DNA from: Amphiscolops sp. MND2022
Taxonomy: Eukaryota
Length of the DNA: 64,000 bases
Direction: 5' to 3'
Assembly (NCBI GenBank): GCA_964187785.1
Contig: OZ076410.1
Location: forward strand, 11,842,001-11,906,000
Shown: piece after piece, positions 1 to 44,332 of the stretch
Layout of the letters: every line of letters starts with the position of its first letter
Position numbering within the stretch: position 1 is the stretch's first letter
Translations under genes and position numbers: made by a program
The notes under the pieces: model-generated
Told to the model about the DNA's origin: nothing
Databases searched by the model: none
Seen by the model: the letters and a program-made list of their open reading frames with translations, nothing else

Positions 1-420
1 TAATAGCACTCTAATTATTTCTTAAGAAAACTTTTCCGAAGTTTCAGTTTGAACCGCACAACTTCCTCGGGAATTTGAGATCCGTTTCATATTTTCTTCT
101 CAAAGCTCGTTTGGTTATACGAACGGCTACCCTAACCATATCCAATTTCATGAGAACTCTTTTTTGACGTCAATACATCACATGGACTTTTAAATACAAT
201 TATTTAATAGAGTTGAAAATTGATTATTCGCATATCAAATGGTAAAGGAAAAGGGAACTTATTCCTTTCCACACCTTTTTGGCTCCGAAAATGATAGCAG
301 AACGCGTTTATCATTGAAAGTTTTTCAGCCAACACAAAATGAGAACGCTGCTCATTTCAATAAAAGTTGTTCAGGCAAATTAATAATGAATTGCCTTTCC
401 TCTGGTTTTGTTCAACTCAC

Positions 421-435
421 TTCCGGATGGAAAAC
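421..435 (-). CDS. Possible 15-nt microexon of the unidentified left-edge gene
   Basis: aaatcag|GTTTTCCATCCGGAA|gtgagt on the minus strand; phase 1-1, compatible with the 1841-2113 exon. Splice signals only. Confidence 0.25.
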
Positions 436-600
436 CTGATTTGTGAAATGAACATAACTGTACGTTCACGACGTGAATGAAAAAATGAAGCAACAAAGAT
501 CTTTCAGGATCATTCCATTTCATTCAAAGCAAGAAACTGTCCAAACTGATTCTAAAAAGCAAGAAAAGATGGGGAAATCATAGATAAAACAATGATTGAC

Positions 601-1093
601 TAGGGTGGGGCCCGTGCCCGTGGCCCGTATCAATGCCCGTACGCCCGTAAAAAATTTTAGGCCCGTATATTTATAAAACATGCCCGTACATACAATTAAC
701 TTATTGATTTGAGAATTTCATGGTTACGACACACCGGTCCCACGAAAACTAGAAATGTTCATCAAGTTCAAACTCAACAAAATTTCAACGAGCGAAGCGG
801 CGGTTGAGCGTTGTTTTAGTTCCCATAAACTGATACATTCTCCAATGAGAGCCAGTTTATCCGATGAAATTGTTGATAAACTCTTATTCATTCGATATAA
901 TCACATCATTAAATACCCTGGTTTTGTAACTTTTGATAAATCTGAGGATGATGCAGCTTTAAATGAGCTAGAGGAATTTGAAGTATTTTGAATTATGTTT
1001 TTTTCAGAGGTGCCCGTAGGTCATGCCCGTTGCCCGTATGTGAAAGCCCGTTGCCCGTACTTTTGAGCCCGTGCCCGTACGGGCCCCACCCAA
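601..1093 (+). mobile_element. Internally deleted hAT DNA transposon
   Basis: TIRs tagggtggggcccgt / acgggccccacccaa; subterminal gcccgt repeats; both flanks carry (a)tgattgac (imperfect 8-9 bp TSD); residual transposase ORF inside. Confidence 0.8.
755..991 (+). pseudogene. hAT transposase C-terminal dimerisation-domain fragment
   Basis: STSEAAVERCFSSHKLIHSPMRASLSDEIVDKLLFIRYN fits the hAT dimerisation pattern (A.VER.FS...R..L....V..L.FI..N). Confidence 0.75.
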
Positions 1094-4381: not shown

Positions 4382-4453
4382 GTCCTTATGGCACAGTGGT
4401 TAACACTTATGCCGCGCAATCGGGAGGCTGCAGGTTCGAATCTCTCTGGGGTT
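4382..4453 (+). pseudogene. tRNA-derived sequence (pseudo-tRNA or SINE head)
   Basis: A-box-like TGGCACAGTGG and B-box GGTTCGAATC at tRNA spacing, followed by T-runs; acceptor and anticodon stems do not pair well. Confidence 0.5.
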
Positions 4454-4694
4454 TTGGCTTTTCTCTAAAAGGCGCTTATTATGAAGTTGGCTACTGTGGA
4501 AAAAAAACTTTCTTAGCTGGACTGCAATGCACATTGACTTCGTCATGTGCAAAAAGATAAAAACTGAAAAAAATGGTTGAACTTTTGCAAAAAGACCTAG
4601 CGCAACAAAAATGTTGTTACAAACTGAAATTCTAAAAAATAGGGCGCACGGCGACAGGGGCTCACCTAGCCAAAATAAAAGCCTAGTACCAGAC

Positions 4695-7600
4695 TGTAGA
4701 ATTTTGAAAAGTAGCTTTAACAGTCTGTCGAATGCTCCACTACTACTCAATTAAACCGAAGGGTACCTCTATCCACGAGACAAAGATAGGGCTGAGCATT
4801 CACATAAATTTATAACTCTAAAGATAATTTCAGAGGTGGTGGGGTTCTATTGCATCATATAGTGCTGAATTCCGTTTTATTCTGTTGACTTGCAAAGGGG
4901 TTGTCTCGTGTGCTCTCGCTGTTAGAAAACTAATATTTAGAAGAAGACGAATCTTCGCTTTATTAAAACATCAATTAATAATAGAGGGTTAATACTTCAA
5001 TAAGAATGGTAACAACAAAATCCACAGAAATGGTAATATATTTCCAATGGTTTGGGGGTACATATAATTTATTAGATACAAAGCAGGTAACGTATCCCGG
5101 AGGATAAATGAGTATTCCCGAGGGAAGAATTGAAAGGTGATCAAATTGATCGATGAAAGATTATCTCAACCCGCCGTACTTTCTCTAACGTTCTTGAAGT
5201 GAATTCTCTCTATCTCACTGTCCCGGACTGTATCGTTTCTACGGATTAACTTCCGCTAAAGTCTCTCTAAGCTAACCCACAGTTAAAGTACTGCTGAACT
5301 CAAACTTTCTCTAACCCGAATCTCACGGCGTTAGGAAATAAAACAATCTCGACAAAATCTGGCGAAGTCCCACTTCCCAATTCTGCAAAGAACGAAATCT
5401 CTATTTTCTTGGCTTGACAAAGTAATCAACTGCTCTCTAGCTCTGATATCCCTTTGTGGCCCTCAAATATGGCCACTTTTCTTAACTTCAGTTTTCTTCG
5501 GTGTTTTAGTCACTTTCGTGACGAGTGGTCAGTCACGTGACTCCGAGTTACTTCGTTATTGTCAGTTATTTTTCATTTCTACGGGAATTTTCCTAAGTGA
5601 TTTAATCATCATCCTTTTCGGTACAATTTTTACGCTCGGTTAAGTGAGTTTATTGAGAATGCCTAGTTGTTTTCATTCGTAGCCACCTAAGATAAGGGGG
5701 TGTGACGTTCTGAGTCAACTTAGATGTCTTAACATCGGATCATTTATCTTCGGTTTTTACTAACTTATGTTGTCATCAACTCGTGTGAATGACTCCTCCT
5801 ATGACTGGCGGAATGTCCCGCTGTAAATAAATCGATTGGAGTGCTCCCTCAATAATTCCAAGGAACGAAAAAAGCATGTATGCATTTCCTTTAACAATGG
5901 CTAATTCTGAGGTTCATTTTCAACTGTTGAAAAATGGGTATTTCCGTGCCTGGGGGCCAAAACTGTTTATATCTTCTGAAAGGTCTATCCAAGGCCTACA
6001 AATTCGTTACTATTCAACATTCATGTATTTCGACTCCTTCGGGTAGAAAAACGGCATCAAAGTGGGAGTGGTCAAAAACAGTGTCTCCACAAGTCAATTT
6101 TTGGGTACTTTCGGGTCAATTTTCTCATCGAGGCTTCGGGAACCAGCCCGGGGGCCTATATACATCGCTAGTCCATTCAATTGTGAGGATTTGGAGCTAT
6201 TGGGGGGCATTCTATCATTGTTGGTTAAAAAGTTATTTGCATTTTCCCAAAAAGTGTCATTTTGGCTATTTTTGTGTCCTGACCTCCAACTTTGCCCTCG
6301 ATTTTCTCAACTCCTATTAGGTTTTGGCGGATTTCCTTTTAACACAAGGTGGACATAGGTCTTAGGAGTATTGGGTGTAAGTTTGGTCCGGATATCTTCC
6401 AAAACGTGCGGGGGGGGGTTAGCGTTTTCATAATCGTGATTTTTGGGAATTTCCCTATGTCTCCATTTTCTTCGCTGGCGGGGTATTACGGTGAATTCAT
6501 ATTAAGCGTTAATTCTATAGCCATTCCCTCCGCCGACCACCGCCACATCTATGCTGAGCTTGGGGAGCGTTTTCATTGGTTATTCGTTGAGCAATCGCAA
6601 CGCACATGCTGAAAATGCCGTTTTTAGGCCAAAAATCGCTGTTTTTACACCATTTCTGATCGAGATCTCAACACTGGGTAAATATTATCAATTTTCCTTT
6701 TTAGGGTAACTGAAGAACTGTTATACCTTCAATTTAAGACTATCCCGAATAATTTTGGTTCACTAGACGTTTCATAATTAAGTTTTGCAAAAATCCGAAA
6801 AGTCGATTTTTGGTCATTTTCCAAAAGCACTTATTTTCAATGTCATTTTTCACCAACTTGTAATCATCCGATTTTAATGCCCTTCCGGACTTAAGCTCTC
6901 CTTTGGATGTAGTTTTGAATGGTGAAAACCGTTTGTTTCTATCTTTCACCATCTTCGAGAAATCGCGTCGCAAACTTTTAGTTGTATTAATCCCACCGGT
7001 ATAGCGTATAGTGGGTGGCGGCCGTGTAAGGCTGTGTGTATAGTGCCGGCGGCTTTCCAAAATCATTTCTCGCTTTCACTCGCTTGCTGCTAGTTGAACG
7101 CTACTCAATTCACTGCATTTTGACTTGATCTACACTCTTCTATTCATTTTGCATACGTTGTGATTTCACTCGTCTTGTATTAATATCTCCATCCTGTTAA
7201 TATAACTTGTCTTGTTTAATAATAATGACGCGTAAAAGCCGTGATTGTCAGTACAGTTCTGATTTTAATACTCGCAGCGTTGATGCTGTTGAACAAATGG
7301 ATGTCCTTTTCTCTCTTCGTGATTGTCCTGATTTTAATATAATACATTCGGGGTGGCGGCGATTCCCCGTTTTAACACATGTAAATTTCGCTTCAATTTC
7401 CCCTACTGAACCTTGTATCCTTTCCGATGTAAATATTGAGTCTCGTGGCGTACTAAAAGAATTAACCGAGCTTCCTAGTCTTACTTGGCAACATTTTGAA
7501 AATCTCCCCGGTCGTCCTTTAACTGGAATTACGTATGGTCCTGATAACGCCGCTACTCGTCATTTTCCTTCATCAATTCAAGCGGACATGGACTTTAAAG

Positions 7601-8373
7601 ATTGTTTAACTGCTTCGTGCTTTTCAGATCAACAAGTTACTAGTAGCCTAGCTCTTTTAATTCACGGTTCGTGGTTTAGTCCAGCACACGTCGAAGTGGG
7701 TGGCGGCGCTGCGTATTCCTATTTACATACGGGTATTAAACTCTGGTGCGCCGCTACAACAAATACCTCTTCTCGCCTACTTGAGCGTTGTTATAATGAC
7801 GTCGCCAGTTTTATTAATCTAGTTCAACGAGGTCCTCGCTCGCGAGAAGCTACATTTTTCACTTTCCATCTTCAACGTCCCGGCGACTTAATTTACATTC
7901 CTCCTCTGCGCACACACTTAGTACTTACGATGAATAATGTTAAACCGACAGTTCTTTCGGGGTGGGACGCTGTTTATACTCGCGATCATTCTATTATTAA
8001 AAGGACGCTAGACGAATATGTAATTGGAGTTAGGCGAACGACTTGGCGGAATATTTTACGTGAACAAGGGAGGGAAGAATTATCTAGATGGGTGTACTCT
8101 GCCGCTGCTGGCCCTCAAGAAACAAAAGAATATTTACAAAAGCACTGGTCTTATTGGGAACGGAATTGTCCGCAGCTTATATCGACGCTATCATTAGATG
8201 ACGAGTAGATGACGAATACTACGAGCCGCGTCGTCCTTTTAAGCTAAGTTATCTTTCTATTTGTTTACGTAATCGATCACCCTTCAATAAGTATAAAATA
8301 AATATCAATACAACTAAATAATAAAATTGAGTAACTCATGCATTTTAGATACGTTAAAAGTAAAAATCTCACA
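4695..8373 (-). repeat. Element 1 3' LTR (3679 bp)
   Basis: Direct repeat of 18828-22506 at offset 14133; 3 substitutions seen by eye (4901/19034, 6353/20486, 7715/21848). Confidence 0.97.
7225..8208 (+). CDS. JmjC-domain Fe(II)/2-oxoglutarate dioxygenase, KDM2/KDM7-like, encoded antisense inside the 3' LTR (327 aa from ATG)
   Basis: SPAHVEVGGG (HxE), HTGIKLW and QRPGDLIYIPPLRTHLVLT match the JmjC pattern of KDM2/7 (TDFHxDFGG...G.K.F...LFIP..W.HAVLT); AATAAA follows at ~8297. Confidence 0.85.
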   Translation: MTRKSRDCQYSSDFNTRSVDAVEQMDVLFSLRDCPDFNIIHSGWRRFPVLTHVNFASISPTEPCILSDVNIESRGVLKELTELPSLTWQHFENLPGRPLTGITYGPDNAATRHFPSSIQADMDFKDCLTASCFSDQQVTSSLALLIHGSWFSPAHVEVGGGAAYSYLHTGIKLWCAATTNTSSRLLERCYNDVASFINLVQRGPRSREATFFTFHLQRPGDLIYIPPLRTHLVLTMNNVKPTVLSGWDAVYTRDHSIIKRTLDEYVIGVRRTTWRNILREQGREELSRWVYSAAAGPQETKEYLQKHWSYWERNCPQLISTLSLDDE

Positions 8374-8386
8374 TTCCCCCCCACTT
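8374..8386 (-). promoter_or_regulatory. Element 1 polypurine tract
   Basis: Minus-strand aagtgggggggaa directly precedes the 3' LTR. Confidence 0.85.
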
Positions 8387-8616
8387 GGACTGCTACTCTC
8401 CCGAGTAGCTGTAATTTCAATTTTATTTTTGTGCCGAGTAACGAAATAGCTATTTCCTATGTAAAAGAAAGAAGCACGCACAAGTTTTATTAATGTTTAG
8501 TATATTTCCACACGCATTGAATAAATAGGATCCATGTGTAATAATATGATGTACGAAAATTATCAGTACGAAAATCTAACGCAACACACACTCAAAAAAT
8601 GGAGTTAGTATTTAGC

Positions 8617-9420
8617 CTAACTGCTGGTAGGGGGCTGGGTTTTCATGGCTCGCTTCTTTGGGGGCAGGAAGGTAACGTGGGTGGCAGCGGAGCCAGCGTC
8701 ACTGACGTTGCCCGAGTCCGCCTCCTCCATTTGATCGGCGATGACTACCTCCGTCGACGAGCCCGTTGTAGTAGGGGTGGTGGTTGTCCCCGTCGAAGTG
8801 GCGGCAGTTGTTGTAGCCGGGGTTTCCGTCACGAAGGGCAGCATCGCCCTTGAATAAAATCTCATATCCACTCTTGGCCGGGCTGGGGGTTGAGGATACA
8901 CTTGGAACGGCACATCCCAGGGGCTCTCCCCCTGTTGGAGCCACTGCCACATTGTCTCGTGCATGGGGCCCCTCCAGTGGAACCGCGTCGACAATGGGTT
9001 GCCTGCTGCCTGTGGGCCTTGATCTGGCAGCGCAAGGATCCTGGCAAAAGTTGCCATAAAATGCGCCCGCTCCGGACGCTCCAACGCCGCCTGCACAACC
9101 GCTAGCAAGAGGTCTCTCGTCAACTGGCAGTAGAGGCTAAGAGTCAGCCACTGGGGGTACCACAGCGCATCCATGGTGCAAAACTTTTCTACATGAAAGT
9201 AGATTTGGTCTCCGTTCGCCTGTGGTGTTTCGATCTTGTTCAAGCGATAAGTGGCGATTGGGGTTCCAGCTCGAACAATCAATGGCAGCACTCCTGTTTC
9301 GGCGGGTAAATACGCCTGCTGGACTTCTGGCGGCGGTTGGTTGTACATTTGAGAGACCTGCGTCTGGCTGGTGGCAATAGGGCGGTTTGTTCTAAGTGGT
9401 GTTGGGCGAATAGGTTGCAT
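8617..9420 (-). CDS. Element 1 accessory ORF downstream of env (267 aa from first ATG), unknown function
   Basis: Open frame between env and PPT; Thr-rich and acidic tail ending PPKKRAMK (NLS-like). No domain recognised. Confidence 0.7.
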   Translation of the reverse strand: MQPIRPTPLRTNRPIATSQTQVSQMYNQPPPEVQQAYLPAETGVLPLIVRAGTPIATYRLNKIETPQANGDQIYFHVEKFCTMDALWYPQWLTLSLYCQLTRDLLLAVVQAALERPERAHFMATFARILALPDQGPQAAGNPLSTRFHWRGPMHETMWQWLQQGESPWDVPFQVYPQPPARPRVDMRFYSRAMLPFVTETPATTTAATSTGTTTTPTTTGSSTEVVIADQMEEADSGNVSDAGSAATHVTFLPPKKRAMKTQPPTSS

Positions 9421-9879
9421 TATAGTTTTTTTTTCTTTTAGTGTGCAAGTGATGAAACAAGGTTTAATAATATGTATGTTTATGTAATGATTTTTTTTTC
9501 TAAGCTGTAGATTGAGCGTCTGGATACTGCAAAAATTTAGAGCTAAATGGCGAGACGCTATTTCGTTCCTCGGCACTGCAATTTTAATCGGATTAACTCA
9601 TGTGACTCGTTCGTTATTTTATGACTTAATTGTCCGCTCGGACGTTCAAGTGGAGGAGAAAGAAAACAAGTGCTCGCGCGAATGAATAATGTCGGGAGGG
9701 GATACACAAAAGAAATTTTTGCGCTCGCACGAGCGAAAGCATTCAACCAGAAAAGAAAGGAAACAAATATCACGCGAATGCATTAAATATCGTTGCATAT
9801 AAAATGAGGCAAATAAATATGGGGGCGGAGCTTGAGTTAGGAGTTTTATGTTCGGCTTACGATTTCCGTCACAGAGAAC

Positions 9880-12144
9880 TCACTTCCCTGGCATCTTACG
9901 TGACTCCTTTAGTGGACCTGTCTTTGCTTCGTGCACACTCGAAGTTGCCGGCTGTTGTTGCGTCGGCACTGGAGTGGTCTCACGTGACTCCTCGTGGACG
10001 TCGTCTACAGCAGCCGCCGTGTCGCGTTGTACTTCGCCACCGCGCAGCACTGCTGTCATCCACCGTCGCACAGCATACATCTTCCCCCACTTGACCGTCC
10101 ACCCCACAACAGCTATAAGTATAAGCATAAGTAAAGTAACAATGCATGGGAGAATAACATCCTTCCAAATCTTTCTGATGACGGTCGAATGGACCTTTTC
10201 CACCTCCACTAGGAAGGGTTGCGCAATTGCATCCAGCATCTCTTCGGTCACCGCTCGATCCGGTAAACCAGCTAAATTCAATTTTAAATGAGAAAGTAAT
10301 TCCTGGTGGACGTCTCCCATTAACGAGGGAGGGATGACTTCTTCGAGGGATTTTAAATTGTCAAACAGGGGTCGTAGCAAAGGAGTGGGTAAAATGCGAA
10401 CGATTTCACTACTGTCAGTTTCCATACAACTAATAGGGTCGGGAGTGAGGAATAACCCGGCATTTGGGAGTTGCAATCGCCCATTACAGGAAGGCCTTAC
10501 TAAGCAACTTTGGCAGCCCGGTACTCTTATTTCTGCTCGAGCAGTCATGTTCTGAATGGTGAAATCTCCCTTTGCGGACGTTAGGAGATATGTAGAGTCA
10601 TAAAGATATACCGCCTGAGGGTGTTGAGGGAGTGCCACGACCTCTTGAGCACATAGTTTCAGAACGGTGGCAGGCAGATTAAAGAACAGACCCGTGAGAC
10701 AGGAGGTCTTTTGCGATTTCGTGGTTGAAAAGGGTTGTTTACAGAGTCTTAGGCGGTGAGAGCCCCAACAGTGCGTCGAAAGTTCCTGCTCACTAACCTC
10801 CGCGAAATTGGTTTTGTCCCACGACATTAGCAAGTGTGTTTTACTAAGTTGATACTGCGTAGCCCTTTCAGTGTTTGGAATGGGCTGAGGGATGGGGGTA
10901 GCTCTATATACCTCGTGCACTCCATGTCCTGTATACATGGGTATTTCTAACAAAAGATGCAATCCTTCATTCGATATATATGCGTCCCTGACTACCTCAA
11001 AAGAGTAATAGGCGGCGATCAATTTCCTGGGTATAGCCTCGTTTAACCCGTTTACGTCGAAGGAATCAAGTATTTTTACCAACGTCGACGGAGGGATTAA
11101 AGATATCGGCAGATATCCGTGCACCAAAGAAGACATAGCGTCCTGCAAAATGGATGCCATATTTGCTAGCGAAATTCGTCTCTGATTAATATCATTTACT
11201 ATGCGTCGATACTGAGTGGTTAGGTTTTGGAACGCTGCCGCCATTATCAAGGTGTTTCGATGGCGATCTTGAGTTAGTCTCGCGACGCACTCCGCTTTTT
11301 CCACGTAATCGTAAATTTCGTCTACTACACTGTTAATCGTTCCGTTTAACATCTGCACATTTTCATCCACGGTCTGTTTAAGTGCAACCAACTCCCTAGT
11401 ACTGACATCTACCGGCATTTGAACCGTGAGCGCTTCAAGCAACTCTGTTTTCAGGTACAACACAGTTTCCTCTAAATACTCGACCTTCCGGGCCAACTCT
11501 TCGATTTTTCGGCGATCTGTTTCCTTACATGTGGAACCGAACGGAATTAACTTGTCCACAAAACATGATACTGAATCGGACCAAGGTTGGAAAAGGGGGC
11601 GAAGAAAAATTCGCGATAGCTCACTCCCTAACATCGATCCGGCGATCGCGCCAACAACGGATCGTGATAAACGGTCAGGTTTGCCGGTGGGAACATCATC
11701 GACCGTATGATTGAGGAACACTGTTAGCGATTTTTTCATGGCCAGCCAATCGTGCTGGAACATTCGATGGCTTTGGAATATTTCCGCTAGGTTGTCTTGC
11801 AAAAAGCGTTTCCAATATTTAAACAAATGAGGGTCAGCGCATTCTCGCGAAAACATCCGTAGGTCTAGGTCGGTCAGCCGGTTTAGCGCATTTTCTAAGA
11901 TTCGGTTCAACGGCTCCGGGTCTAAGTGGGGCACTTGGGGAAAGGGGAGGAAAGTCCACAGCGTTTTTACTGCCTTGACAAGCACCACCGGAGGTTCAGG
12001 AGTAAAAGCCGCTCCGGAGATTGAATGAGTTCCGTTAACGATACCGGGTCTTCCGAGTTTCCTCTGAAAATCGTAAGGATCGAACGAGTTTTGCCCAAAA
12101 ATACCAAAAATAAGGTATAACACAAGGAATAATACGGTTTTCAT
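9880..12144 (-). CDS. env: Element 1 envelope glycoprotein, class I fusion / errantivirus-baculovirus F-like (754 aa)
   Basis: Signal peptide MKTVLFLVLYLIFGIFG; RLSR|SVVGAIAGSMLG cleavage site and fusion peptide; heptad region; Cys-rich region; TM VILPCIVTLLMLILIAVVGWTV; N-glycosylation sequons. Confidence 0.85.
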   Translation of the reverse strand: MKTVLFLVLYLIFGIFGQNSFDPYDFQRKLGRPGIVNGTHSISGAAFTPEPPVVLVKAVKTLWTFLPFPQVPHLDPEPLNRILENALNRLTDLDLRMFSRECADPHLFKYWKRFLQDNLAEIFQSHRMFQHDWLAMKKSLTVFLNHTVDDVPTGKPDRLSRSVVGAIAGSMLGSELSRIFLRPLFQPWSDSVSCFVDKLIPFGSTCKETDRRKIEELARKVEYLEETVLYLKTELLEALTVQMPVDVSTRELVALKQTVDENVQMLNGTINSVVDEIYDYVEKAECVARLTQDRHRNTLIMAAAFQNLTTQYRRIVNDINQRRISLANMASILQDAMSSLVHGYLPISLIPPSTLVKILDSFDVNGLNEAIPRKLIAAYYSFEVVRDAYISNEGLHLLLEIPMYTGHGVHEVYRATPIPQPIPNTERATQYQLSKTHLLMSWDKTNFAEVSEQELSTHCWGSHRLRLCKQPFSTTKSQKTSCLTGLFFNLPATVLKLCAQEVVALPQHPQAVYLYDSTYLLTSAKGDFTIQNMTARAEIRVPGCQSCLVRPSCNGRLQLPNAGLFLTPDPISCMETDSSEIVRILPTPLLRPLFDNLKSLEEVIPPSLMGDVHQELLSHLKLNLAGLPDRAVTEEMLDAIAQPFLVEVEKVHSTVIRKIWKDVILPCIVTLLMLILIAVVGWTVKWGKMYAVRRWMTAVLRGGEVQRDTAAAVDDVHEESRETTPVPTQQQPATSSVHEAKTGPLKESRKMPGK

Positions 12145-12509
12145 CTTTAGTATGGGGTGGTTTCAAGGGGTTTAAGCACCCTAAGCTAACTAATTCGAGG
12201 AGGAACTATATATATATATATATTTTTTTGTTTTTGTTAGTTGATGAGGTATTGTGGAGAACTTCGAATACAGAGGAGAGCTGCTGTATTATTTAAGAAG
12301 TATTCAAGGCAAGAAGGCAACTGGCGTATAAAACAAAAAAATGTGAAGTGGTGAACGTTCACGAGCGTGCGTCGCAAAAGGTGATCATCACTTCACGTAC
12401 CGATTGGCGTCCGTATTTTAGTCAGCCTAATCGGCTTTCAATACGAGGGCGAGTTTGCAGTACTCCGAGCGGTCATACTCGCTAAACGACCTATTCGGAG
12501 TCTTCGGCG

Positions 12510-15500
12510 CTACTTTCGCCGAGAGGTGTAGTCATCGATTCCGAAACGAACGGGCGGTTTACGTTGCCGGGACCTACAAGGTTCCGAGCTACTCTCGCTC
12601 GCTTCTACTTCTTCTATTCTCGGAGAGGGGTCACCACCCTCCGAAATCTCTTCGTAAACATGAGTTTGATCAGCGACTGATCCTTCGGGGATGTCAACAT
12701 ATAAGGGATTAGGTTCAGGGCATTCTTCGTCACTTGCCTTTTCCGCGACTTTCGGTACGTCATCGAACGTCACGTGCGGTTTGTTACGAGCGGCTTGTGA
12801 TTCAGCGGTTGTCGGGTTGAACACATTGAATGGGAGACCATCTATTTCACTTTCAGTCTCCTCTGAAATATTTGGCAATTCTTCGTAATTAGAGACCACG
12901 AGTTTCTTTCGGCGTTCGGATCTGCGAGGCGGAGTATCACCGACGAAAGGTTTTAACCGATTGAAATGGACTTTCTGCCATTTTTCGGGAGCACTTTTCT
13001 TACAGATACGGTAATTGACTTCGCTGGTACGACTCAAGACTTCATAGGGACCTTGCCACGGCAAGTAAAACTTTCGCGACTTTGCCTTATGCGGTTCCAA
13101 TAGCCACACGAGATCTCCTGGTTCGAATGGTTCGCCGTGTACTTTGCGATGATAGTAGTCTTTTTGACGGCGCTGTTCTTTCCCCATAGTCATTTGCGCA
13201 TGTTCATGCACCTCGTACAATTTTTCATTCAATTCAGCGGCTGGTTCGCTTAATTCTAAACGAGGATCGCCAGGCGGTTTTGGATAATACAAATCGATTG
13301 GATACTGCGCTTCTTTGCCGAACAACATCGAGAACGGGGTCGTTCCTGTCGTCCTATGCACCGTAGTATTATACACAAAAACAACATGCGGCAAATATAA
13401 GTCCCATTCCTGAGGTCTCTCTGCACAATACTTGGAAATTGTGTCGGCAATTACGCGATTGAATCGTTCGACTTGTCCATTGCCTTGTGGATGATACGGG
13501 GACGTTCTTGTCTTATCAATCATGAAAATTTTACAGACGTCGTGCATCATTTCACTATTAAAGTTCGTCCCTTGGTCGGTGTGAATCACGTCGGGAGCGC
13601 CGAACTTAGTAATCCACTCCTCTACTATCGCTGTTGCTACTGTAGTAGCCGTCATGTCTTTCAGCGGAACCGCCACAACGTATTTAGTGTACAAGTCAGA
13701 CATTACTAATATATACTTGGACAACGAGCGCTTTGCTAACGTGACTGGTCCTAGAATGTCGGCCGCCATTACTTTAAACGGCGCTTGCACCTCGAAAGGA
13801 TGCAGTTCCGCTCGCCGCGGCTTCCCGGCTGTGGAACGTGCTGCGCAGCGAAGACAACTCGCTACATGCATCTCTACGCTCGAACGTAAAGCAGGCCACC
13901 AAAATCGTTGCTTAATGCGTGCTAAAGTTTTTTCTACAGCGAAGTGACCGCCACTCAATGGCGAGTCGTGTAACTGATAGAGGATCTCTTTTCTCATTTC
14001 CTTTGGCACGACTGCCTGCCAAACTTCATGTGTGCGGTTATTGGGACGCCACCTTCGATACAATACGTTGTTCTCTAATGCTAAACTTTCCCAATTGCTC
14101 CACAGTTCCAATGCCTCGGGGCAGTTCCATGACAACGCTGTTTCCTTGGAAATCGGATTAAGACCGAGATTAGCCATCGAGTCGCTTAGGGACAATTCTG
14201 CATCCTTCATAGCTCGGAAAAGGATTCCCATCGCTGGATCTAAGCGTTGTTTGTTAGCCAGGTCGCTATCGGATTTAGTCCACGATATACGCCTTCCCAC
14301 TTGGCCCGTTGATAACATTTCCTCCGGCATCGCCGTGGCGCAGCACGTATCAGGGTCTCGGGAACGACTAGTCGATGTCCGAGGTTCTACGTTTGGATAT
14401 AGCGGTAAATCTTGTTCGGGAGTGTAAACCGTTACCGTACAATACATTCCTTGAAACACTGTCTCTAAGCAAATTGCCACGTTAATCCATTCCAAACGGT
14501 CATCGATACAGCCTATCCTAGGCATTGCGAAAGCCGACACTCCATGAATATTCGCATGCGACCACATTCGCCTTAAACACTTTTTCAAATCATCGTATGT
14601 GGCTACGTTGTGTTCGTTTTTTCTAGTTATCAACACGTAGATGTATCGCGCCTTCTCTTCGTCTCTATACACAAGAAATCCACCGACTTGATTCAATGAC
14701 TCGGGCAGCGGTCGCAAATGGGAATACCTGCATACAAAAGTTATCATTGGGAGATTAAGCACGCGCATCTCGGCAGATGCACAGAGGACTAGCGCGTCCC
14801 CAGCGTTAATAAATTCTCCGGTCTTATAACGGACGACTTCTCTCGGTGGACGGTGGATATGTAAACGCACGTGTCTATTTACGAACTCGTCGTCCTCGTT
14901 CGCATCGTTTTTCTTGCTTCGGGCTGACTTAACATCCTGTTCCGCATCTAGTAGCGCGGTGTCAAAATTTTCAAATTCGGGAATGGGACCTCTCAAGTCC
15001 TCTTCCTCGCCAGGCATCCATTCTGGCACGTCGTTTGGCCGCCTACTTAATCCGTCCGCGTTACAGTGGTGTTGGCCTGCTCGATGCACTATTTTGTAGT
15101 CGTACTCTTGCAGCTTTTGGATCATTCGGAACGTCATTCCGTCGGCGTTCTGCCGGAATAGCCACTGGAGGCTCGCGTGATCCGTTCTAATTATACACTT
15201 CGTTCCGTATATGTACGGTCTAAACCACTGCACGGCTTGGACTACGCCGAGAGCTTCCCGTTTAGTAGTGGCGTAATTCACTTCGGTTTTTGTCAATACT
15301 CTAGACTCGAAAGCAATCGGGTACTCGGTTCCATCTACTACTTGCGACAGCACTGCTCCAAGAGCAGTTTCGCTTGCGTCCGTATCAATCACAAAAGGGA
15401 GCGAAAAATTCGGAAATGCTAGTATTGGACCGGCTAGCAGTCGCTCCTTGAGTGTACAAAAAGCTTCTTCGTGTTCGTCGTTCCACGTAAATTTCGTTCC

Positions 15501-17360
15501 TTTACTAGTTAGCAAGTAGAGTGGCCGAGCCACTTCGGCAAAATTTTTCACAAATTTCCGATAGTAATTGCAAAATGCCGTGAATGAGCGGACTTGTGTC
15601 ACATTTTTCGGTCGTTCCCATGTCCGAATGGCTTCTAACTTTTTCGGGTCTGGCTGAATGCCTTTTTGGTTAATGACGTGGCCGAGATAGTGAACTTCGT
15701 TTTGGAACAAATTGCATTTTTTTGGCTTCAATTTCAAACCGGCCATTCTCAATACTTGAAATACTTTCCTCAGGTGTGCTAAATGTTCTTCCGGTGTTTT
15801 ACTGTATGTCAAGACGTCGTCAAGAAATATTAACACGAACTGATACAAAAATTCCTTGAAGACATCATTCATGTATCTTTGGAACGTCGGAGGAGCATTG
15901 GTCAAGCCGAACGGCATCTTCAAGCATTCATAGAGTCCTCCATCGGGAGTACAAAACGCTGTTTTATGACGATCCTCCGGTGCGACAGGGATTTGCCAAT
16001 AGCCGCTGGCCAAGTCAAGGGACGAGAAAACTCCCGCTCCCTGTAGCGCGTCTATCGTCTGGCCGATCCGCGGCAACGGATACGCATCCTTCACTGTCAC
16101 TTCGTTCAACTTACGATAGTCGATGCACATCCGATTAGAGCCGTCTTTCTTCGGGACCATTACAATCGGACTGCTATACGGACTTTTACTCGGAACGATT
16201 ACTTTCTTTTCTATCATTTCGTTAATTTCGGCTCGGATCGCATCTAATTTATGTGGAGCGATTTTGTACGGAGGAATTTTTATTGGCGGCGAGTTCTCTA
16301 TATCAATTTTGTGTTCAATTCCTACCGCTGTCCCGAGAGGGTCCTTAGGTAGGGAAAACACATCACGATACTCGCGAATCAGCGTTCGCAGTTCTTCCTT
16401 TATTTCGGCACTTTCGAGATCCGACGTGGCTAAATTGAGAATTTCGTCAACGTCTCTCTCTAATTCGTCGTTTAGTTCGGTGGCCACAGAGACATGGTCT
16501 GGAGCGGGTATTGTGTCGAACACATAAGCTTCGTTTCCAGGGGAAGGGACATGTCTTCCGCCGAGTTGCATTGGCACTACGACCGTAGAACGGTCCGGTT
16601 TTTTAATCACGAGCTCTTGCGATACAACGTTCGGATAAATTTTGCTTTCTATCATGAATTTTAGTCCCATCAGGACTTCTGGGTACAATCCATCAACGAC
16701 GACGAATTCGTCTTCGGCAACGAGATCTCCAATTTTCACCATTGCCTTCATGAGTCCTCTAGTGGACATAACGTTGCCTACCGGACCTATCAACGAACTT
16801 TGGTTCGGAACGATCTCATTTCCTAGCTCGGTCGCTAGAGTACTACTGATTAGGCTGTTACTCGCACCGGTGTCTACTATGGCCCAACAGCATTGGTCCT
16901 CGACTTGATAGGGAACAAGCAAGCCTGAACCTTTGACAAATTTTCCCGCAGCTATTGCATGTGGGGCTTCCCTTTCATTAGATTTTGCGCACGCATTTTT
17001 GACCCCATTGAATTTTTCAAGTTCTTCCGGGTCTCCTTTCGGAAGGATTTTTACGGATCCTGGTTCTAAAGAATTAAAACCGGTTTCGGAGGGTTCTACT
17101 AGGGGACTATTTACATTTGGGGGTTCGATATTAGTATAAAAGCCTCCGGGTCCTGATTCTTGGCACATCTCTTCCCAAGTTTTAGGGTTTACGTACCGCG
17201 ATCTATTTTTAATTCCGTAACGATTTTCGGCGCTGCGGGAGCGTGATCGTGCGTGATACGGCGTGGAACCTTTGTTAAGAATTGTAGCAGACCTAAGAGG
17301 GTTGGGGTCTCCAGCACGGGTGGAACCTGCTACTGCGCACCCGGCCGTTTCCAGTTTAAA
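12510..17360 (-). CDS. pol: Element 1 pol: protease-RT-RNase H-macrodomain-integrase (reached by -1 frameshift from gag)
   Basis: AIVDTGAS; DAYPLPRI, MPFGL, FLDD; DASETALGAVL; TARG1-like insert (~14425-14840); HHCC zinc finger; integrase D-D-E (AADILGP, HTDQG, QVERFN); GPY. Frame is open up to the slippery site at 17360. Confidence 0.95.
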   Translation of the reverse strand, partial: FKLETAGCAVAGSTRAGDPNPLRSATILNKGSTPYHARSRSRSAENRYGIKNRSRYVNPKTWEEMCQESGPGGFYTNIEPPNVNSPLVEPSETGFNSLEPGSVKILPKGDPEELEKFNGVKNACAKSNEREAPHAIAAGKFVKGSGLLVPYQVEDQCCWAIVDTGASNSLISSTLATELGNEIVPNQSSLIGPVGNVMSTRGLMKAMVKIGDLVAEDEFVVVDGLYPEVLMGLKFMIESKIYPNVVSQELVIKKPDRSTVVVPMQLGGRHVPSPGNEAYVFDTIPAPDHVSVATELNDELERDVDEILNLATSDLESAEIKEELRTLIREYRDVFSLPKDPLGTAVGIEHKIDIENSPPIKIPPYKIAPHKLDAIRAEINEMIEKKVIVPSKSPYSSPIVMVPKKDGSNRMCIDYRKLNEVTVKDAYPLPRIGQTIDALQGAGVFSSLDLASGYWQIPVAPEDRHKTAFCTPDGGLYECLKMPFGLTNAPPTFQRYMNDVFKEFLYQFVLIFLDDVLTYSKTPEEHLAHLRKVFQVLRMAGLKLKPKKCNLFQNEVHYLGHVINQKGIQPDPKKLEAIRTWERPKNVTQVRSFTAFCNYYRKFVKNFAEVARPLYLLTSKGTKFTWNDEHEEAFCTLKERLLAGPILAFPNFSLPFVIDTDASETALGAVLSQVVDGTEYPIAFESRVLTKTEVNYATTKREALGVVQAVQWFRPYIYGTKCIIRTDHASLQWLFRQNADGMTFRMIQKLQEYDYKIVHRAGQHHCNADGLSRRPNDVPEWMPGEEEDLRGPIPEFENFDTALLDAEQDVKSARSKKNDANEDDEFVNRHVRLHIHRPPREVVRYKTGEFINAGDALVLCASAEMRVLNLPMITFVCRYSHLRPLPESLNQVGGFLVYRDEEKARYIYVLITRKNEHNVATYDDLKKCLRRMWSHANIHGVSAFAMPRIGCIDDRLEWINVAICLETVFQGMYCTVTVYTPEQDLPLYPNVEPRTSTSRSRDPDTCCATAMPEEMLSTGQVGRRISWTKSDSDLANKQRLDPAMGILFRAMKDAELSLSDSMANLGLNPISKETALSWNCPEALELWSNWESLALENNVLYRRWRPNNRTHEVWQAVVPKEMRKEILYQLHDSPLSGGHFAVEKTLARIKQRFWWPALRSSVEMHVASCLRCAARSTAGKPRRAELHPFEVQAPFKVMAADILGPVTLAKRSLSKYILVMSDLYTKYVVAVPLKDMTATTVATAIVEEWITKFGAPDVIHTDQGTNFNSEMMHDVCKIFMIDKTRTSPYHPQGNGQVERFNRVIADTISKYCAERPQEWDLYLPHVVFVYNTTVHRTTGTTPFSMLFGKEAQYPIDLYYPKPPGDPRLELSEPAAELNEKLYEVHEHAQMTMGKEQRRQKDYYHRKVHGEPFEPGDLVWLLEPHKAKSRKFYLPWQGPYEVLSRTSEVNYRICKKSAPEKWQKVHFNRLKPFVGDTPPRRSERRKKLVVSNYEELPNISEETESEIDGLPFNVFNPTTAESQAARNKPHVTFDDVPKVAEKASDEECPEPNPLYVDIPEGSVADQTHVYEEISEGGDPSPRIEEVEASESSSEPCRSRQRKPPVRFGIDDYTSRRK

Positions 17361-18652
17361 TGGTCCTGTTTAGCCCTCTGCGGGCAGTCTCTGGCAAAAT
17401 GTCCTATTTCCTTACAACTAAAGCACTCAGCAACGGAGGGGGGTGGATTAGTTATAGTTACATGGCCCGAACCTGTCCTAACTTGAGACGCACTACTGTT
17501 AGGAGTTAACTGAGAAAGTAGAGGCTGGGACTGCCACTGTTGCGACTGTACACCACCGCGACTCTGCGCACTCCCCAATGCTCCCACAATCGCTGTGGAG
17601 ATTGAGGTGGGCAAATCTTGTATTTGTTTTACAAAGAGGTCAGTCTGTTTGCAGATATTGGAATCTAAACGGTCTAAGCGACTTGCAACGTTAGTCATTG
17701 AGGTCTGTAGGGCTGCAAATTTTTCTTCGATTACGGGGTTATTGGAGTTGGGATAACCAGCTCGAACTACGTCTAGTTGATCGCAATCTTCCTGACAATA
17801 TCGAATTTTGTCGGCCCGAAGAGGCCTTTTATTTTCCGAATTTTTCTGAATCAGTTCAAGTTCTTGTGCTCTTTGTAGGATTTCACAAAAATTCCTCTCT
17901 GTTTCATCTTCATACAATTTCTGTTGAATTCGAGAATCAAAAAGTCCTTCCAAAAATTGATCACGCAGATCAGGGTCTCTTTCAGCCAGTGTTTTTTCAG
18001 AAAAAGCTAATTCTCCCAATTGACGGACCCGTCGGGCATATTCTTTTAGATTTTCACTTTCTAGCTGACGAATCGCCTTAAATTCGGATCGCGTTGCCCG
18101 TTTACTGCGGTACTGTTGCATTTTAGGTTTCAGCTCTTCCAGCAACCACTCCAAGCGGGGTGCTGTTTGGCCTGGTAATTTTTCAACAAAACGGCGCGGA
18201 ACTGTTTCGAATTCTTCCACTGCCCAAGAAGTTAAACAAGCAGGCAATGCGGCAATGGCTTGGCGATCATTCCAACCATTTGCTTTAACGACGGATTTGT
18301 AGTGTTTAACCCAGAGCTCCCAACGATTAAAATCTTTTCCCGGAAATTTTTCTGGTTTAATAGGCGATTTTTGGTAAACTGCTTTAGTTTTCCCACTACT
18401 CCCGGGGTAACATGATAAAGATTCGTCTGAGTCATATCCGGCCTCCAATTTTACATGTTCCATTTCCAACATCAAATCCATCAATTTTCGTTTCGCTGTC
18501 TCTTTTCGTTCTTTTTCGTTCGTATATTTATCCCAAGAATAAGTAAACGCTGACTTACTAGAGAGGGGTTTACTACCACCTGAGCCGTCGCCTTCGGCGG
18601 GCTTGGAAGAGTCGGGGGGCGAGTCGAGATCGTGGGTTTCTTCTTCTGACAT
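17330..18652 (-). CDS. gag: Element 1 gag (440 aa from ATG)
   Basis: KPEKF...W..HY..V..AN.W capsid-like N-terminus; CCHC knuckle CFSCKEIGHFARDC. Confidence 0.92.
   Translation of the reverse strand: MSEEETHDLDSPPDSSKPAEGDGSGGSKPLSSKSAFTYSWDKYTNEKERKETAKRKLMDLMLEMEHVKLEAGYDSDESLSCYPGSSGKTKAVYQKSPIKPEKFPGKDFNRWELWVKHYKSVVKANGWNDRQAIAALPACLTSWAVEEFETVPRRFVEKLPGQTAPRLEWLLEELKPKMQQYRSKRATRSEFKAIRQLESENLKEYARRVRQLGELAFSEKTLAERDPDLRDQFLEGLFDSRIQQKLYEDETERNFCEILQRAQELELIQKNSENKRPLRADKIRYCQEDCDQLDVVRAGYPNSNNPVIEEKFAALQTSMTNVASRLDRLDSNICKQTDLFVKQIQDLPTSISTAIVGALGSAQSRGGVQSQQWQSQPLLSQLTPNSSASQVRTGSGHVTITNPPPSVAECFSCKEIGHFARDCPQRAKQDHLNWKRPGAQ
17354..17360 (-). promoter_or_regulatory. -1 ribosomal frameshift slippery site U_UUA_AAC (element 1)
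   Basis: Gag frame CAT TTA AAC; the -1 frame opens just upstream and runs into pol; a CGGGTG...CACCCG stem follows. Confidence 0.8.
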
Positions 18653-18809
18653 CTCTGCGGGTGAGAAAAGGACGTGGGGGCAGCCAAAAAACAAGGATGA
18701 TGGAAGATAAGAAGATTGAAATTAGGAAAATCAAAGGAAAGTTGAGGGAATGCAAGAAGGGGGTGTAAATCGAGGATAAAAGGGATTGCAACAGAAATAA
18801 AGGAATAGG

Positions 18810-18826
18810 CCCACCCAGGAGCGCCA
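18810..18826 (-). promoter_or_regulatory. Element 1 primer binding site
   Basis: TGGCGCTCCTGGGTGGG begins 1 nt after the 5' LTR; cognate tRNA not identified. Confidence 0.75.
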
Positions 18827-18827
18827 A

Positions 18828-21800
18828 TGTAGAATTTTGAAAAGTAGCTTTAACAGTCTGTCGAATGCTCCACTACTACTCAATTAAACCGAAGGGTACC
18901 TCTATCCACGAGACAAAGATAGGGCTGAGCATTCACATAAATTTATAACTCTAAAGATAATTTCAGAGGTGGTGGGGTTCTATTGCATCATATAGTGCTG
19001 AATTCCGTTTTATTCTGTTGACTTGCAAAGGGGGTGTCTCGTGTGCTCTCGCTGTTAGAAAACTAATATTTAGAAGAAGACGAATCTTCGCTTTATTAAA
19101 ACATCAATTAATAATAGAGGGTTAATACTTCAATAAGAATGGTAACAACAAAATCCACAGAAATGGTAATATATTTCCAATGGTTTGGGGGTACATATAA
19201 TTTATTAGATACAAAGCAGGTAACGTATCCCGGAGGATAAATGAGTATTCCCGAGGGAAGAATTGAAAGGTGATCAAATTGATCGATGAAAGATTATCTC
19301 AACCCGCCGTACTTTCTCTAACGTTCTTGAAGTGAATTCTCTCTATCTCACTGTCCCGGACTGTATCGTTTCTACGGATTAACTTCCGCTAAAGTCTCTC
19401 TAAGCTAACCCACAGTTAAAGTACTGCTGAACTCAAACTTTCTCTAACCCGAATCTCACGGCGTTAGGAAATAAAACAATCTCGACAAAATCTGGCGAAG
19501 TCCCACTTCCCAATTCTGCAAAGAACGAAATCTCTATTTTCTTGGCTTGACAAAGTAATCAACTGCTCTCTAGCTCTGATATCCCTTTGTGGCCCTCAAA
19601 TATGGCCACTTTTCTTAACTTCAGTTTTCTTCGGTGTTTTAGTCACTTTCGTGACGAGTGGTCAGTCACGTGACTCCGAGTTACTTCGTTATTGTCAGTT
19701 ATTTTTCATTTCTACGGGAATTTTCCTAAGTGATTTAATCATCATCCTTTTCGGTACAATTTTTACGCTCGGTTAAGTGAGTTTATTGAGAATGCCTAGT
19801 TGTTTTCATTCGTAGCCACCTAAGATAAGGGGGTGTGACGTTCTGAGTCAACTTAGATGTCTTAACATCGGATCATTTATCTTCGGTTTTTACTAACTTA
19901 TGTTGTCATCAACTCGTGTGAATGACTCCTCCTATGACTGGCGGAATGTCCCGCTGTAAATAAATCGATTGGAGTGCTCCCTCAATAATTCCAAGGAACG
20001 AAAAAAGCATGTATGCATTTCCTTTAACAATGGCTAATTCTGAGGTTCATTTTCAACTGTTGAAAAATGGGTATTTCCGTGCCTGGGGGCCAAAACTGTT
20101 TATATCTTCTGAAAGGTCTATCCAAGGCCTACAAATTCGTTACTATTCAACATTCATGTATTTCGACTCCTTCGGGTAGAAAAACGGCATCAAAGTGGGA
20201 GTGGTCAAAAACAGTGTCTCCACAAGTCAATTTTTGGGTACTTTCGGGTCAATTTTCTCATCGAGGCTTCGGGAACCAGCCCGGGGGCCTATATACATCG
20301 CTAGTCCATTCAATTGTGAGGATTTGGAGCTATTGGGGGGCATTCTATCATTGTTGGTTAAAAAGTTATTTGCATTTTCCCAAAAAGTGTCATTTTGGCT
20401 ATTTTTGTGTCCTGACCTCCAACTTTGCCCTCGATTTTCTCAACTCCTATTAGGTTTTGGCGGATTTCCTTTTAACACAAGGTGGGCATAGGTCTTAGGA
20501 GTATTGGGTGTAAGTTTGGTCCGGATATCTTCCAAAACGTGCGGGGGGGGGTTAGCGTTTTCATAATCGTGATTTTTGGGAATTTCCCTATGTCTCCATT
20601 TTCTTCGCTGGCGGGGTATTACGGTGAATTCATATTAAGCGTTAATTCTATAGCCATTCCCTCCGCCGACCACCGCCACATCTATGCTGAGCTTGGGGAG
20701 CGTTTTCATTGGTTATTCGTTGAGCAATCGCAACGCACATGCTGAAAATGCCGTTTTTAGGCCAAAAATCGCTGTTTTTACACCATTTCTGATCGAGATC
20801 TCAACACTGGGTAAATATTATCAATTTTCCTTTTTAGGGTAACTGAAGAACTGTTATACCTTCAATTTAAGACTATCCCGAATAATTTTGGTTCACTAGA
20901 CGTTTCATAATTAAGTTTTGCAAAAATCCGAAAAGTCGATTTTTGGTCATTTTCCAAAAGCACTTATTTTCAATGTCATTTTTCACCAACTTGTAATCAT
21001 CCGATTTTAATGCCCTTCCGGACTTAAGCTCTCCTTTGGATGTAGTTTTGAATGGTGAAAACCGTTTGTTTCTATCTTTCACCATCTTCGAGAAATCGCG
21101 TCGCAAACTTTTAGTTGTATTAATCCCACCGGTATAGCGTATAGTGGGTGGCGGCCGTGTAAGGCTGTGTGTATAGTGCCGGCGGCTTTCCAAAATCATT
21201 TCTCGCTTTCACTCGCTTGCTGCTAGTTGAACGCTACTCAATTCACTGCATTTTGACTTGATCTACACTCTTCTATTCATTTTGCATACGTTGTGATTTC
21301 ACTCGTCTTGTATTAATATCTCCATCCTGTTAATATAACTTGTCTTGTTTAATAATAATGACGCGTAAAAGCCGTGATTGTCAGTACAGTTCTGATTTTA
21401 ATACTCGCAGCGTTGATGCTGTTGAACAAATGGATGTCCTTTTCTCTCTTCGTGATTGTCCTGATTTTAATATAATACATTCGGGGTGGCGGCGATTCCC
21501 CGTTTTAACACATGTAAATTTCGCTTCAATTTCCCCTACTGAACCTTGTATCCTTTCCGATGTAAATATTGAGTCTCGTGGCGTACTAAAAGAATTAACC
21601 GAGCTTCCTAGTCTTACTTGGCAACATTTTGAAAATCTCCCCGGTCGTCCTTTAACTGGAATTACGTATGGTCCTGATAACGCCGCTACTCGTCATTTTC
21701 CTTCATCAATTCAAGCGGACATGGACTTTAAAGATTGTTTAACTGCTTCGTGCTTTTCAGATCAACAAGTTACTAGTAGCCTAGCTCTTTTAATTCACGG

Positions 21801-22506
21801 TTCGTGGTTTAGTCCAGCACACGTCGAAGTGGGTGGCGGCGCTGCGTTTTCCTATTTACATACGGGTATTAAACTCTGGTGCGCCGCTACAACAAATACC
21901 TCTTCTCGCCTACTTGAGCGTTGTTATAATGACGTCGCCAGTTTTATTAATCTAGTTCAACGAGGTCCTCGCTCGCGAGAAGCTACATTTTTCACTTTCC
22001 ATCTTCAACGTCCCGGCGACTTAATTTACATTCCTCCTCTGCGCACACACTTAGTACTTACGATGAATAATGTTAAACCGACAGTTCTTTCGGGGTGGGA
22101 CGCTGTTTATACTCGCGATCATTCTATTATTAAAAGGACGCTAGACGAATATGTAATTGGAGTTAGGCGAACGACTTGGCGGAATATTTTACGTGAACAA
22201 GGGAGGGAAGAATTATCTAGATGGGTGTACTCTGCCGCTGCTGGCCCTCAAGAAACAAAAGAATATTTACAAAAGCACTGGTCTTATTGGGAACGGAATT
22301 GTCCGCAGCTTATATCGACGCTATCATTAGATGACGAGTAGATGACGAATACTACGAGCCGCGTCGTCCTTTTAAGCTAAGTTATCTTTCTATTTGTTTA
22401 CGTAATCGATCACCCTTCAATAAGTATAAAATAAATATCAATACAACTAAATAATAAAATTGAGTAACTCATGCATTTTAGATACGTTAAAAGTAAAAAT
22501 CTCACA
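18828..22506 (-). repeat. Element 1 5' LTR (3679 bp)
   Basis: Direct repeat of 4695-8373; adjacent to the PBS. Confidence 0.97.
21358..22341 (+). CDS. Second copy of the LTR-encoded JmjC dioxygenase (5' LTR)
   Basis: Same ORF as 7225-8208 except GAAFSY versus GAAYSY. Confidence 0.85.
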   Translation: MTRKSRDCQYSSDFNTRSVDAVEQMDVLFSLRDCPDFNIIHSGWRRFPVLTHVNFASISPTEPCILSDVNIESRGVLKELTELPSLTWQHFENLPGRPLTGITYGPDNAATRHFPSSIQADMDFKDCLTASCFSDQQVTSSLALLIHGSWFSPAHVEVGGGAAFSYLHTGIKLWCAATTNTSSRLLERCYNDVASFINLVQRGPRSREATFFTFHLQRPGDLIYIPPLRTHLVLTMNNVKPTVLSGWDAVYTRDHSIIKRTLDEYVIGVRRTTWRNILREQGREELSRWVYSAAAGPQETKEYLQKHWSYWERNCPQLISTLSLDDE

Positions 22507-22766
22507 CAGACCTTTCAAACGCGCTATTGTTCAATTTTTTGGAATGCGTCGTTGTGGAGATATTATTGATTGAAAATTCTAAATATGATTTTTCGAAAAT
22601 TTGCAAAAACGCCCAGGTCAATTAGGATTAATTTACACCGATGCACATAAGTTTTCATTACTACAAAGTAATGACACAATTGTATCACATCAATGAAACA
22701 TGAACCTGGCTTTGGAGGCAGTTTTCATAGATTTGAAGAAACTGGGCCACGAATGAAACTATTGTG

Positions 22767-23012: not shown

Positions 23013-23028
23013 CTAAAACATACACGAC

Positions 23029-23513: not shown

Positions 23514-23547
23514 TACACGACCACTAGTAGGAGGTACAGGGTTGTGC

Positions 23548-37754: not shown

Positions 37755-37790
37755 GCTCACCCCCTGGCAGGGTGAAAGAAAATAAATGAG

Positions 37791-39301: not shown

Positions 39302-39347
39302 CTAAAAGTAAACTAATAAATGAATGAACTTGAAAATGTTTTTGGCT

Positions 39348-44325: not shown

Positions 44326-44332
44326 AGTAAGG

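Follow-up and report, generated by a model that had tools for sequence, protein, structure and literature searches.

Two retroviral systems are among those closest to a gene carried in a long terminal repeat (LTR). The U3 (unique 3') region of mouse mammary tumor virus (MMTV) contains an open reading frame (ORF), sag, which lies in the sense orientation and encodes a superantigen. For the antisense gene HBZ of human T-cell leukemia virus type 1 (HTLV-1), the LTR supplies just the promoter, and the coding sequence lies in the internal region. The present analysis concerns an LTR retroelement in a 64,000-nucleotide stretch of the genome of Amphiscolops sp. MND2022 (assembly GCA_964187785.1, contig OZ076410.1, positions 11,842,001 to 11,906,000 of the forward strand; the whole stretch is called the window below). 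Each LTR of this element contains an intact ORF, antisense to gag-pol, for a JmjC-like protein. The locus resembles MMTV sag and HTLV-1 HBZ in having coding capacity in, or driven from, an LTR, and resembles HBZ also in its antisense orientation. It differs in that neither retroviral gene encodes an enzyme from wholly inside the LTR; the systems are compared here by description, not by sequence.

Other mobile elements carry a factor that may counter host silencing, and to that extent they are also comparable. VANC of the Arabidopsis VANDAL elements is a transposon-encoded epigenetic modifier. TET/JBP dioxygenases, which are Fe(II)/2-oxoglutarate (2OG) enzymes like those of the JmjC class, are carried on fungal DNA transposons (PMC12730594). 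In contrast to the gene described here, the TET/JBP genes belong to a non-JmjC fold family, travel on DNA transposons and lie outside the terminal repeats. JmjC genes are also carried in the genomes of parasites, namely Leptopilina boulardi filamentous virus and giant viruses, and the proteins of these viruses provide the best viral-structure matches to the LTR-borne protein; however, they belong to large DNA viruses rather than to the LTR of a retroelement, and the likeness is at the level of the fold only.

A literature search of incomplete coverage returned no description of a JmjC gene within an LTR or on a retrotransposon, and the LTR-embedded JmjC-like gene is real and apparently undescribed in the literature. 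LTRs are normally regulatory DNA only. With a conserved enzyme gene lying wholly within it, an LTR, and above all a solo LTR, becomes a different kind of locus; solo LTRs in their hundreds would be potential protein-coding loci, not inert scars. If the oxygenase targets chromatin or host restriction factors, it would represent a counter-defence enzyme of an animal-type retroelement, parallel to TET/JBP in fungi and VANC in plants.

An ORF in both LTRs of a young retroelement

The unit at 4695-22506 of the window (minus strand; 17,812 bp, or 17.8 kb) is a complete, very young Ty3/gypsy-type element. Its LTRs were found as direct repeats in an offset scan; they have TG...CA termini and are 99.92% identical, with three mismatches (4901, 6353 and 7715). 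Along with these LTR ends, the short target-site duplication, primer-binding site, polypurine tract, zinc-knuckle gag and protease-reverse transcriptase-RNase H-integrase order are all as expected for Metaviridae-type elements (Table 1). A long interspersed nuclear element (LINE) reverse transcriptase in the flanks has a Pfam HTH_animal domain and points to an animal host. The nearest named relatives of pol in a protein search are for the most part from animals, with some from green algae.

A first-pass annotation, made from the sequence without database searches, had reported an intact 327-aa ORF at the U3 end of both LTRs, antisense to gag-pol, and this ORF is indeed present in each (Table 1). 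It is antisense because gag, pol and the two further ORFs between the LTRs all lie on the minus strand. The copy in the 3' LTR starts with the ATG at 7225, has an in-frame stop just upstream of 7207, and ends with TAG at 8206-8208; in each LTR, 165 bp separate the end of the ORF from the U3 edge. Minus-strand AATAAA hexamers are clustered at 4876-5068 and 5649, a pattern in keeping with sense polyadenylation close to the U5 end that would place the ORF in U3. A gene in U3 passes into both LTRs when the element is reverse-transcribed, at every integration, and the annotation's proposal that the gene is duplicated along with the element agrees with the intact copy in each LTR. The same annotation correctly noted that one of the three LTR differences alters the protein: the mismatch at 7715 gives Y at residue 164 in the 3' LTR and F in the 5' LTR, and relatives mostly have F at that column.

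Table 1. Positions of the features discussed, in window coordinates unless another sequence is named
Feature	Sequence	Position	Strand	Basis or remarks
Target-site duplication CAGAC, 5 bp	Window	left 4690..4694; right 22507-22511		Flanks the LTR pair
3' LTR (element orientation), 3679 bp	Window	4695..8373	-	Repeat alignment
JmjC-like oxygenase ORF, 327 aa (putative), in 3' LTR	Window	7225..8208	+	Residue 164 = Y
Second JmjC-like ORF copy, 327 aa, in 5' LTR	Window	21358..22341	+	Residue 164 = F
Two AATAAA hexamers, candidate poly(A) signals	Window	8297 and 8320 (8297..8325); other LTR 22430-22458	+	Between stop codon and LTR edge
Conserved non-coding LTR block, candidate promoter or cis element	Window	6845..6968; copy 20978-21101		260-380 bp upstream of ORF ATG
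Polypurine tract	Window	8374..8388	-	Adjoins 3' LTR; identical in L012
ORF319	Window	8617..9576	-	Between env-like ORF and 3' LTR; homologue in L014
env-like ORF754, 754 aa	Window	9880..12144	-	Type I membrane glycoprotein topology
pol, intact, 1552 aa, order protease-reverse transcriptase-RNase H-integrase	Window	12510..17168	-	Pfam, E 1e-38 to 1e-9
gag with CCHC zinc knuckle	Window	17330..18694	-	Pfam zf-CCHC, E=7e-7
Primer-binding site	Window	18810..18827	-	Adjoins 5' LTR; same sequence in L012 and L013
5' LTR (element orientation), 3679 bp	Window	18828..22506	-	Repeat alignment
L012, full element	ERZ25074608	~4609-20054		Target-site duplication CGTGG; primer-binding site and polypurine tract as in window; LTRs 99.8% identical; pol 67% identical
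L003, decayed relative	ERZ25074608			LTR 94% identical; pol called in several pieces; ORF shortened to 307 aa
L014, element	ERZ26696514			pol 70% identical; ORF319 homologue; env-like gene broken into three pieces
L002 and L010, solo LTRs, 4.1 kb	ERZ26859043			Target-site duplications GTAAT and CTGGT; termini homologous to window LTR
L013, full element	ERZ26859043	LTRs 4414-7419 and 16711-19716		gag; pol 66% identical; env-like 71% identical
P0230 gene	L009 (ENA ERZ17099311, 14-kb contig)	82-1074		Contig end; closely packed ORFs

Conservation of the LTR gene

A homologue search among 5.8 billion proteins recovered 81 homologues of the 327-aa protein, nearly all from ENA assemblies. In assembly ERZ25074608, the exact protein is encoded at five further places, which belong to at least three more full-length copies; the LTRs of these further copies are 99.6-99.8% identical to the window LTRs, with the gene in both LTRs wherever both could be seen. 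The gene is not confined to this one family. Sister families from three assemblies, with pol proteins 66-70% identical to that of the window element, have intact 330-360-aa homologues that are 50-57% identical and occupy the same LTR position. The full element L012, for example, has in each LTR an intact antisense ORF of 332 aa that is 56% identical to the window protein and ends 116 bp from the U3 edge, and L014 has an intact 333-aa ORF at the same LTR position as in the window.

The gene also persists in solo LTRs, after loss of the internal region. L002 and L010, which are 90% identical to each other with the identity bounded exactly by their ends, contain intact ORFs of 359 and 356 aa that are 52% and 51% identical to the window protein. 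Along with L001 and L011, these two loci have no gag or pol within 10 kb and were considered as possible host genes; that reading was rejected for two of the four, L002 and L010, which are solo LTRs by their common boundaries and target-site duplications. L001, a copy of the P0002 family, has a 670-bp tandem duplication (10483-11818, 98% identical) that takes in the ORF's 3' half together with the tail of the LTR.

Between LTR families the ratio of nonsynonymous to synonymous substitution (dN/dS) is 0.13-0.22, with a dS of about 2 that is saturated, and the non-coding LTR DNA is largely unalignable between families in which the ORF remains open. The ratio is thus not near 1, in keeping with the first-pass view of the ORF as a genuine gene, and these sequence comparisons show that it is an old component of the LTR, kept under purifying selection, rather than a recent passenger. 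A profile search over 1.8 billion representatives gave 389 matches; the 150 that were listed are almost all fragments of decayed copies, and neither a more distant cellular relative nor a donor of a captured gene was found among them.

Predicted fold and active-site residues

The annotation had described a full Fe(II) triad and a G-x-K-x-W motif, and both are found in the window protein (H155-V-E157 with H231, and G170-I-K172-L-W174). E157 is invariant among the relatives, and the other positions of the triad and the motif, H155, K172 and H231 among them, are conserved in at least 90%, the exceptions within the LTR-borne clade being fragments of decayed copies. In JmjC enzymes the 2OG-binding Lys lies about 15 residues past the acidic triad residue. 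Here, K172 is 15 residues past E157 and H231 is 74 residues past it, and both the Glu-Lys spacing and the spacing from Glu to the second His fit JmjC enzymes.

An AlphaFold model was built from a 101-sequence alignment that includes the divergent clade described below; a 27-sequence alignment had given an unusable model with a predicted local distance difference test score (pLDDT) of 37.5. When the model was compared with the PDB by Foldseek, the best 50 matches were almost exclusively JmjC-domain proteins, led by TYW5 (E=1e-3, probability 0.96) and followed by JMJD6, FIH, JMJ14, KDM7A, PHF2, UTY, JMJD5 and KDM4A. Against viral models, Leptopilina boulardi filamentous virus supplied the best match, a JmjC-domain protein (E=2e-4), and two JmjC/cupin proteins of giant viruses and a JmjC protein of a phage are also listed. 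In 101 relatives, Pfam reports JmjC_2 in 47 (best E=7e-4) and JmjC in 21 (best E=7e-4), all of them weak matches, and no other Pfam family recurs meaningfully. The fold proposed in the first-pass annotation is thus supported, at moderate confidence, by the structural neighbours of the model, by the conserved residues and, below threshold, by the Pfam matches; the profile search of the PDB was empty. On this evidence, a JmjC fold is likely. Pfam finds only the stand-alone domain in the 327 aa, with neither PHD nor CXXC nor any other reader, so that the protein does appear, as had been suggested, to be stripped of such readers.

Nature of the gene and of its product

The interpretation that best accounts for these data is that a Ty3/gypsy-type lineage carries a self-contained accessory gene in its unusually long LTRs (3-4.5 kb), at the U3 edge and antisense to gag-pol, and that this gene probably encodes a JmjC-type Fe(II)/2OG oxygenase core of about 330 aa. 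Several observations weigh against it. The Pfam JmjC match of the window protein (residues 148-236, E=0.022) scores 15.6 bits against a curated cut-off of 24, no Pfam match that was checked, in the window protein or its relatives, attains the curated cut-off, and neither the protein nor the family profile found a JmjC match among PDB sequences. The 101-sequence model is of moderate confidence (pLDDT 56.8, predicted template modelling score 0.52), with the H-x-E loop in a segment where pLDDT is below 50, and TM-scores in the Foldseek comparison with the PDB are 0.2-0.38 at identities of at most 17%. The triad of the distant homologue P0230 is incomplete, with no first His. Furthermore, both LTRs of the full element L013 are of the L002 type but lack about 1.1 kb, the ORF included. 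These LTRs are 98.9% identical and both are gene-less, showing that a gene-less derivative has transposed; and because L013 has the ORF in neither LTR, the gene is dispensable in cis. Finally, the 3' end of the genomic RNA of the element would have a complementary sequence in the mRNA of the gene, which is a possible cost of the arrangement.

The transposition of a lineage that had lost the gene, like the dN/dS of 0.61 obtained against the decayed copy L003, is what one might expect if the ORF were simply a passenger, either a recently captured and unmaintained fragment of a host gene in one LTR or an ORF that arose by chance. Such an origin is nevertheless highly improbable. The number of homologues and the low dN/dS between families exclude a chance ORF, and at least four families, from three assemblies, have an intact ORF at this LTR position, in proteins that have diverged to the identities given above. 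For practical purposes, the passenger and chance readings are refuted by these conservation data.

If the product is a JmjC-type oxygenase, as we prefer, its subfamily is a separate question. The first-pass annotation assigned it to the KDM2/KDM7 type, that is, to histone lysine demethylases, and proposed that it may act as an anti-silencing factor by erasing H3K9, H3K27 or H3K36 methylation over copies of the element. The JmjC-like fold and conserved triad would suit such an enzyme, as would the long retention of the gene by the element, and a basic C-terminal tail in the P0005 family may be a nuclear localization signal. Moreover, the list of structural neighbours includes chains of KDM7A, PHF2 and KIAA1718 at ranks 12-37. 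However, KDM2/KDM7 enzymes (PHF8, PHF2, KIAA1718) share the JmjC fold with the LTR protein without being its nearest neighbours: TYW5, JMJD6 and FIH lead, and KDM7/PHF-type chains begin only at rank 12, with a probability of at most 0.41. Pfam assignments are split between JmjC_2 and JmjC, with more relatives matching the former. The histone-reader domains are missing by Pfam, and the PHD, CXXC and F-box modules of KDM2/KDM7 proteins are absent from the LTR protein. In addition, the acidic triad residue is Glu here, whereas KDM2/7 enzymes use Asp. The KDM2/7 assignment was therefore not upheld and we consider it unlikely; removal of repressive chromatin marks becomes one candidate role, not the one favoured by the structural neighbours of the model.

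The leading neighbours point instead to JmjC-only hydroxylases of the JMJD6, FIH, JMJD5 or TYW5 kind. The substrate of such an enzyme would be RNA, tRNA or a protein other than a histone; a host restriction or splicing factor, Gag or Env of the element itself, and the primer tRNA are examples. These JmjC-only 2OG oxygenases are the closest structures and are alike in their single-domain size (about 330 aa for the LTR protein), in the His-x-acid...His triad and in the Lys past the acid, and stand-alone JmjC proteins are also borne by viruses. Yet the structural matches are weak, with TM-scores no higher than 0.38, and the shared identity is 17% or less. The LTR protein falls below the Pfam threshold and has Glu as its acid, while the known enzymes are products of cellular single-copy genes that do not travel on a mobile element. 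Nor was any match reported to Pfam Cupin_8, the family to which the JmjC-only hydroxylases belong. A hydroxylase of this kind is accordingly a tentative reading, both for the enzyme class and for the substrates just named, and the structural neighbours of the model slightly favour a hydroxylase-type JmjC protein over a lysine demethylase. It is also conceivable, if rather improbable, that the protein is a non-catalytic binding or decoy protein on a cupin scaffold, with the conserved residues kept for the fold or for metal-dependent stability. P0230, in which the ORF is intact despite the absence of the first His, is consistent with that idea, but the conservation of H155, E157, K172 and H231 at 90% or more within the LTR-borne clade argues against it.

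Expression signals and a possible mode of action

The first-pass annotation had credited the ORF with its own AATAAA, and past the stop codon but short of the LTR edge there are in fact two such hexamers. AATAAA is not enriched in the window as a whole (111 found, 104 expected), so that its presence after the ORF is by itself weak evidence of a poly(A) signal and no more than suggestive. In three other LTR families, AATAAA or ATTAAA occurs 68-118 nt past the stop codon, within AT-rich tails.

Upstream of the ORF, the conserved block listed in Table 1 is 76-86% identical between LTR families whose remaining non-coding DNA fails to align, and it is conserved in every LTR family examined, with an invariant core at about 6920-6961. 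The core is also retained in the gene-less LTR of L013, and so the block more likely serves the whole LTR, possibly as a promoter working in both directions. L002 carries part of the block a second time. Two additional ORFs of the LTR, ORF108 and ORF128, were considered as further genes. ORF108, which overlaps the block, was rejected because it has no consistently open strand in the relatives, and the block is therefore read as non-coding.

According to the mechanism that we propose for the oxygenase gene, an LTR promoter of its own would drive transcription, possibly back-to-back with the element promoter near 6845-6968, and the transcript would terminate at the AATAAA signals ahead of the LTR edge. 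The protein would then act in trans to the benefit of the element, presumably by oxidizing (hydroxylating or demethylating) a macromolecule of the host or of the element; a methylated histone, another protein and RNA are candidate substrates.

Divergent homologues and a virus-like contig

The profile search also uncovered a divergent clade consisting of P0227, P0229 and P0230. P0227 scores 94 bits against the profile, and P0229 and P0230 are 66% and 38% identical to it, respectively; Pfam has no match in any of the three. When P0230 was aligned with the LTR clade by hhalign, the probability was 97.9% (E=4e-13). Among the other products of the contig that carries the P0230 gene are a cysteine protease of the adenovirus type (Peptidase_C5, E=1e-7) and a zinc-finger protein of 1446 aa that weakly matches endonuclease VII. 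The contig may represent a Polinton-like element or some other DNA virus-like element.

One might go further and suppose that there is a clade of mobile-element-borne JmjC-like oxygenases that serve as parasite-encoded modifiers of host chromatin or defence proteins. In the retroelements the gene would be built into the LTR, two copies being deposited with each integration, and solo LTRs that recombination leaves behind would be scattered copies that can be expressed and provide the enzyme in trans, even to gene-less relatives, and a distant branch would reside on a virus-like DNA element. This broader scheme is speculative and, in our judgement, doubtful as a whole. The gene-bearing lineages, the gene-less L013, the env-less L012 and the distant homologue on the virus-like DNA contig form natural comparison groups.

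Other genes of the element and its relatives

The first-pass annotation called the element env-bearing. ORF754 does have the topology of a membrane glycoprotein, including a signal peptide, a C-terminal membrane span, 13 Cys residues and five N-glycosylation sequons, and homologues that are 71% identical are present in L013 and L014. However, it has no match in Pfam or the PDB, so that no envelope family can be named, and it is not similar to the fusion protein of the neighbouring element in the window (see below). L012 lacks an env-like ORF between pol and the 3' LTR. ORF319 likewise has no Pfam match; it has no counterpart in L012 or L013, and its counterpart in L014 is 61% identical over 168 aa.

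GDSL lipase/esterase domains occur in some related pol proteins (P0243 and P0246), whose identity is about 50-59% across part of their length. This is another enzyme that the retroelement group has acquired.

Additional features of the window

A second, unrelated young LTR element occupies 36178-53890 on the minus strand, with LTRs of 1577 bp that differ by one mismatch, and with gag and pol. Its 715-aa ORF matches Pfam Monjiviricetes_fusion, a viral fusion glycoprotein family (E=4e-30), and a downstream 310-aa ORF has a MATH/TRAF domain (E=2e-9). This element is without a JmjC gene, the 3.4 kb between its env-like ORF and pol (41495-44911) having been left unexamined.

Rfam and tRNA scans of the 64-kb window gave no match. 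Repeated DNA is found in several places. A tandem duplication at 23021-27602 has a 2.29-kb unit, with copies 99.96% identical, and part of this unit occurs again at 34939-35287 and in inverted orientation at 54804-55088. Another repeat, about 400 bp long and dispersed, is present at 2140-2571, 56262-56687 and 62973-63367, in copies that are 71-82% identical.

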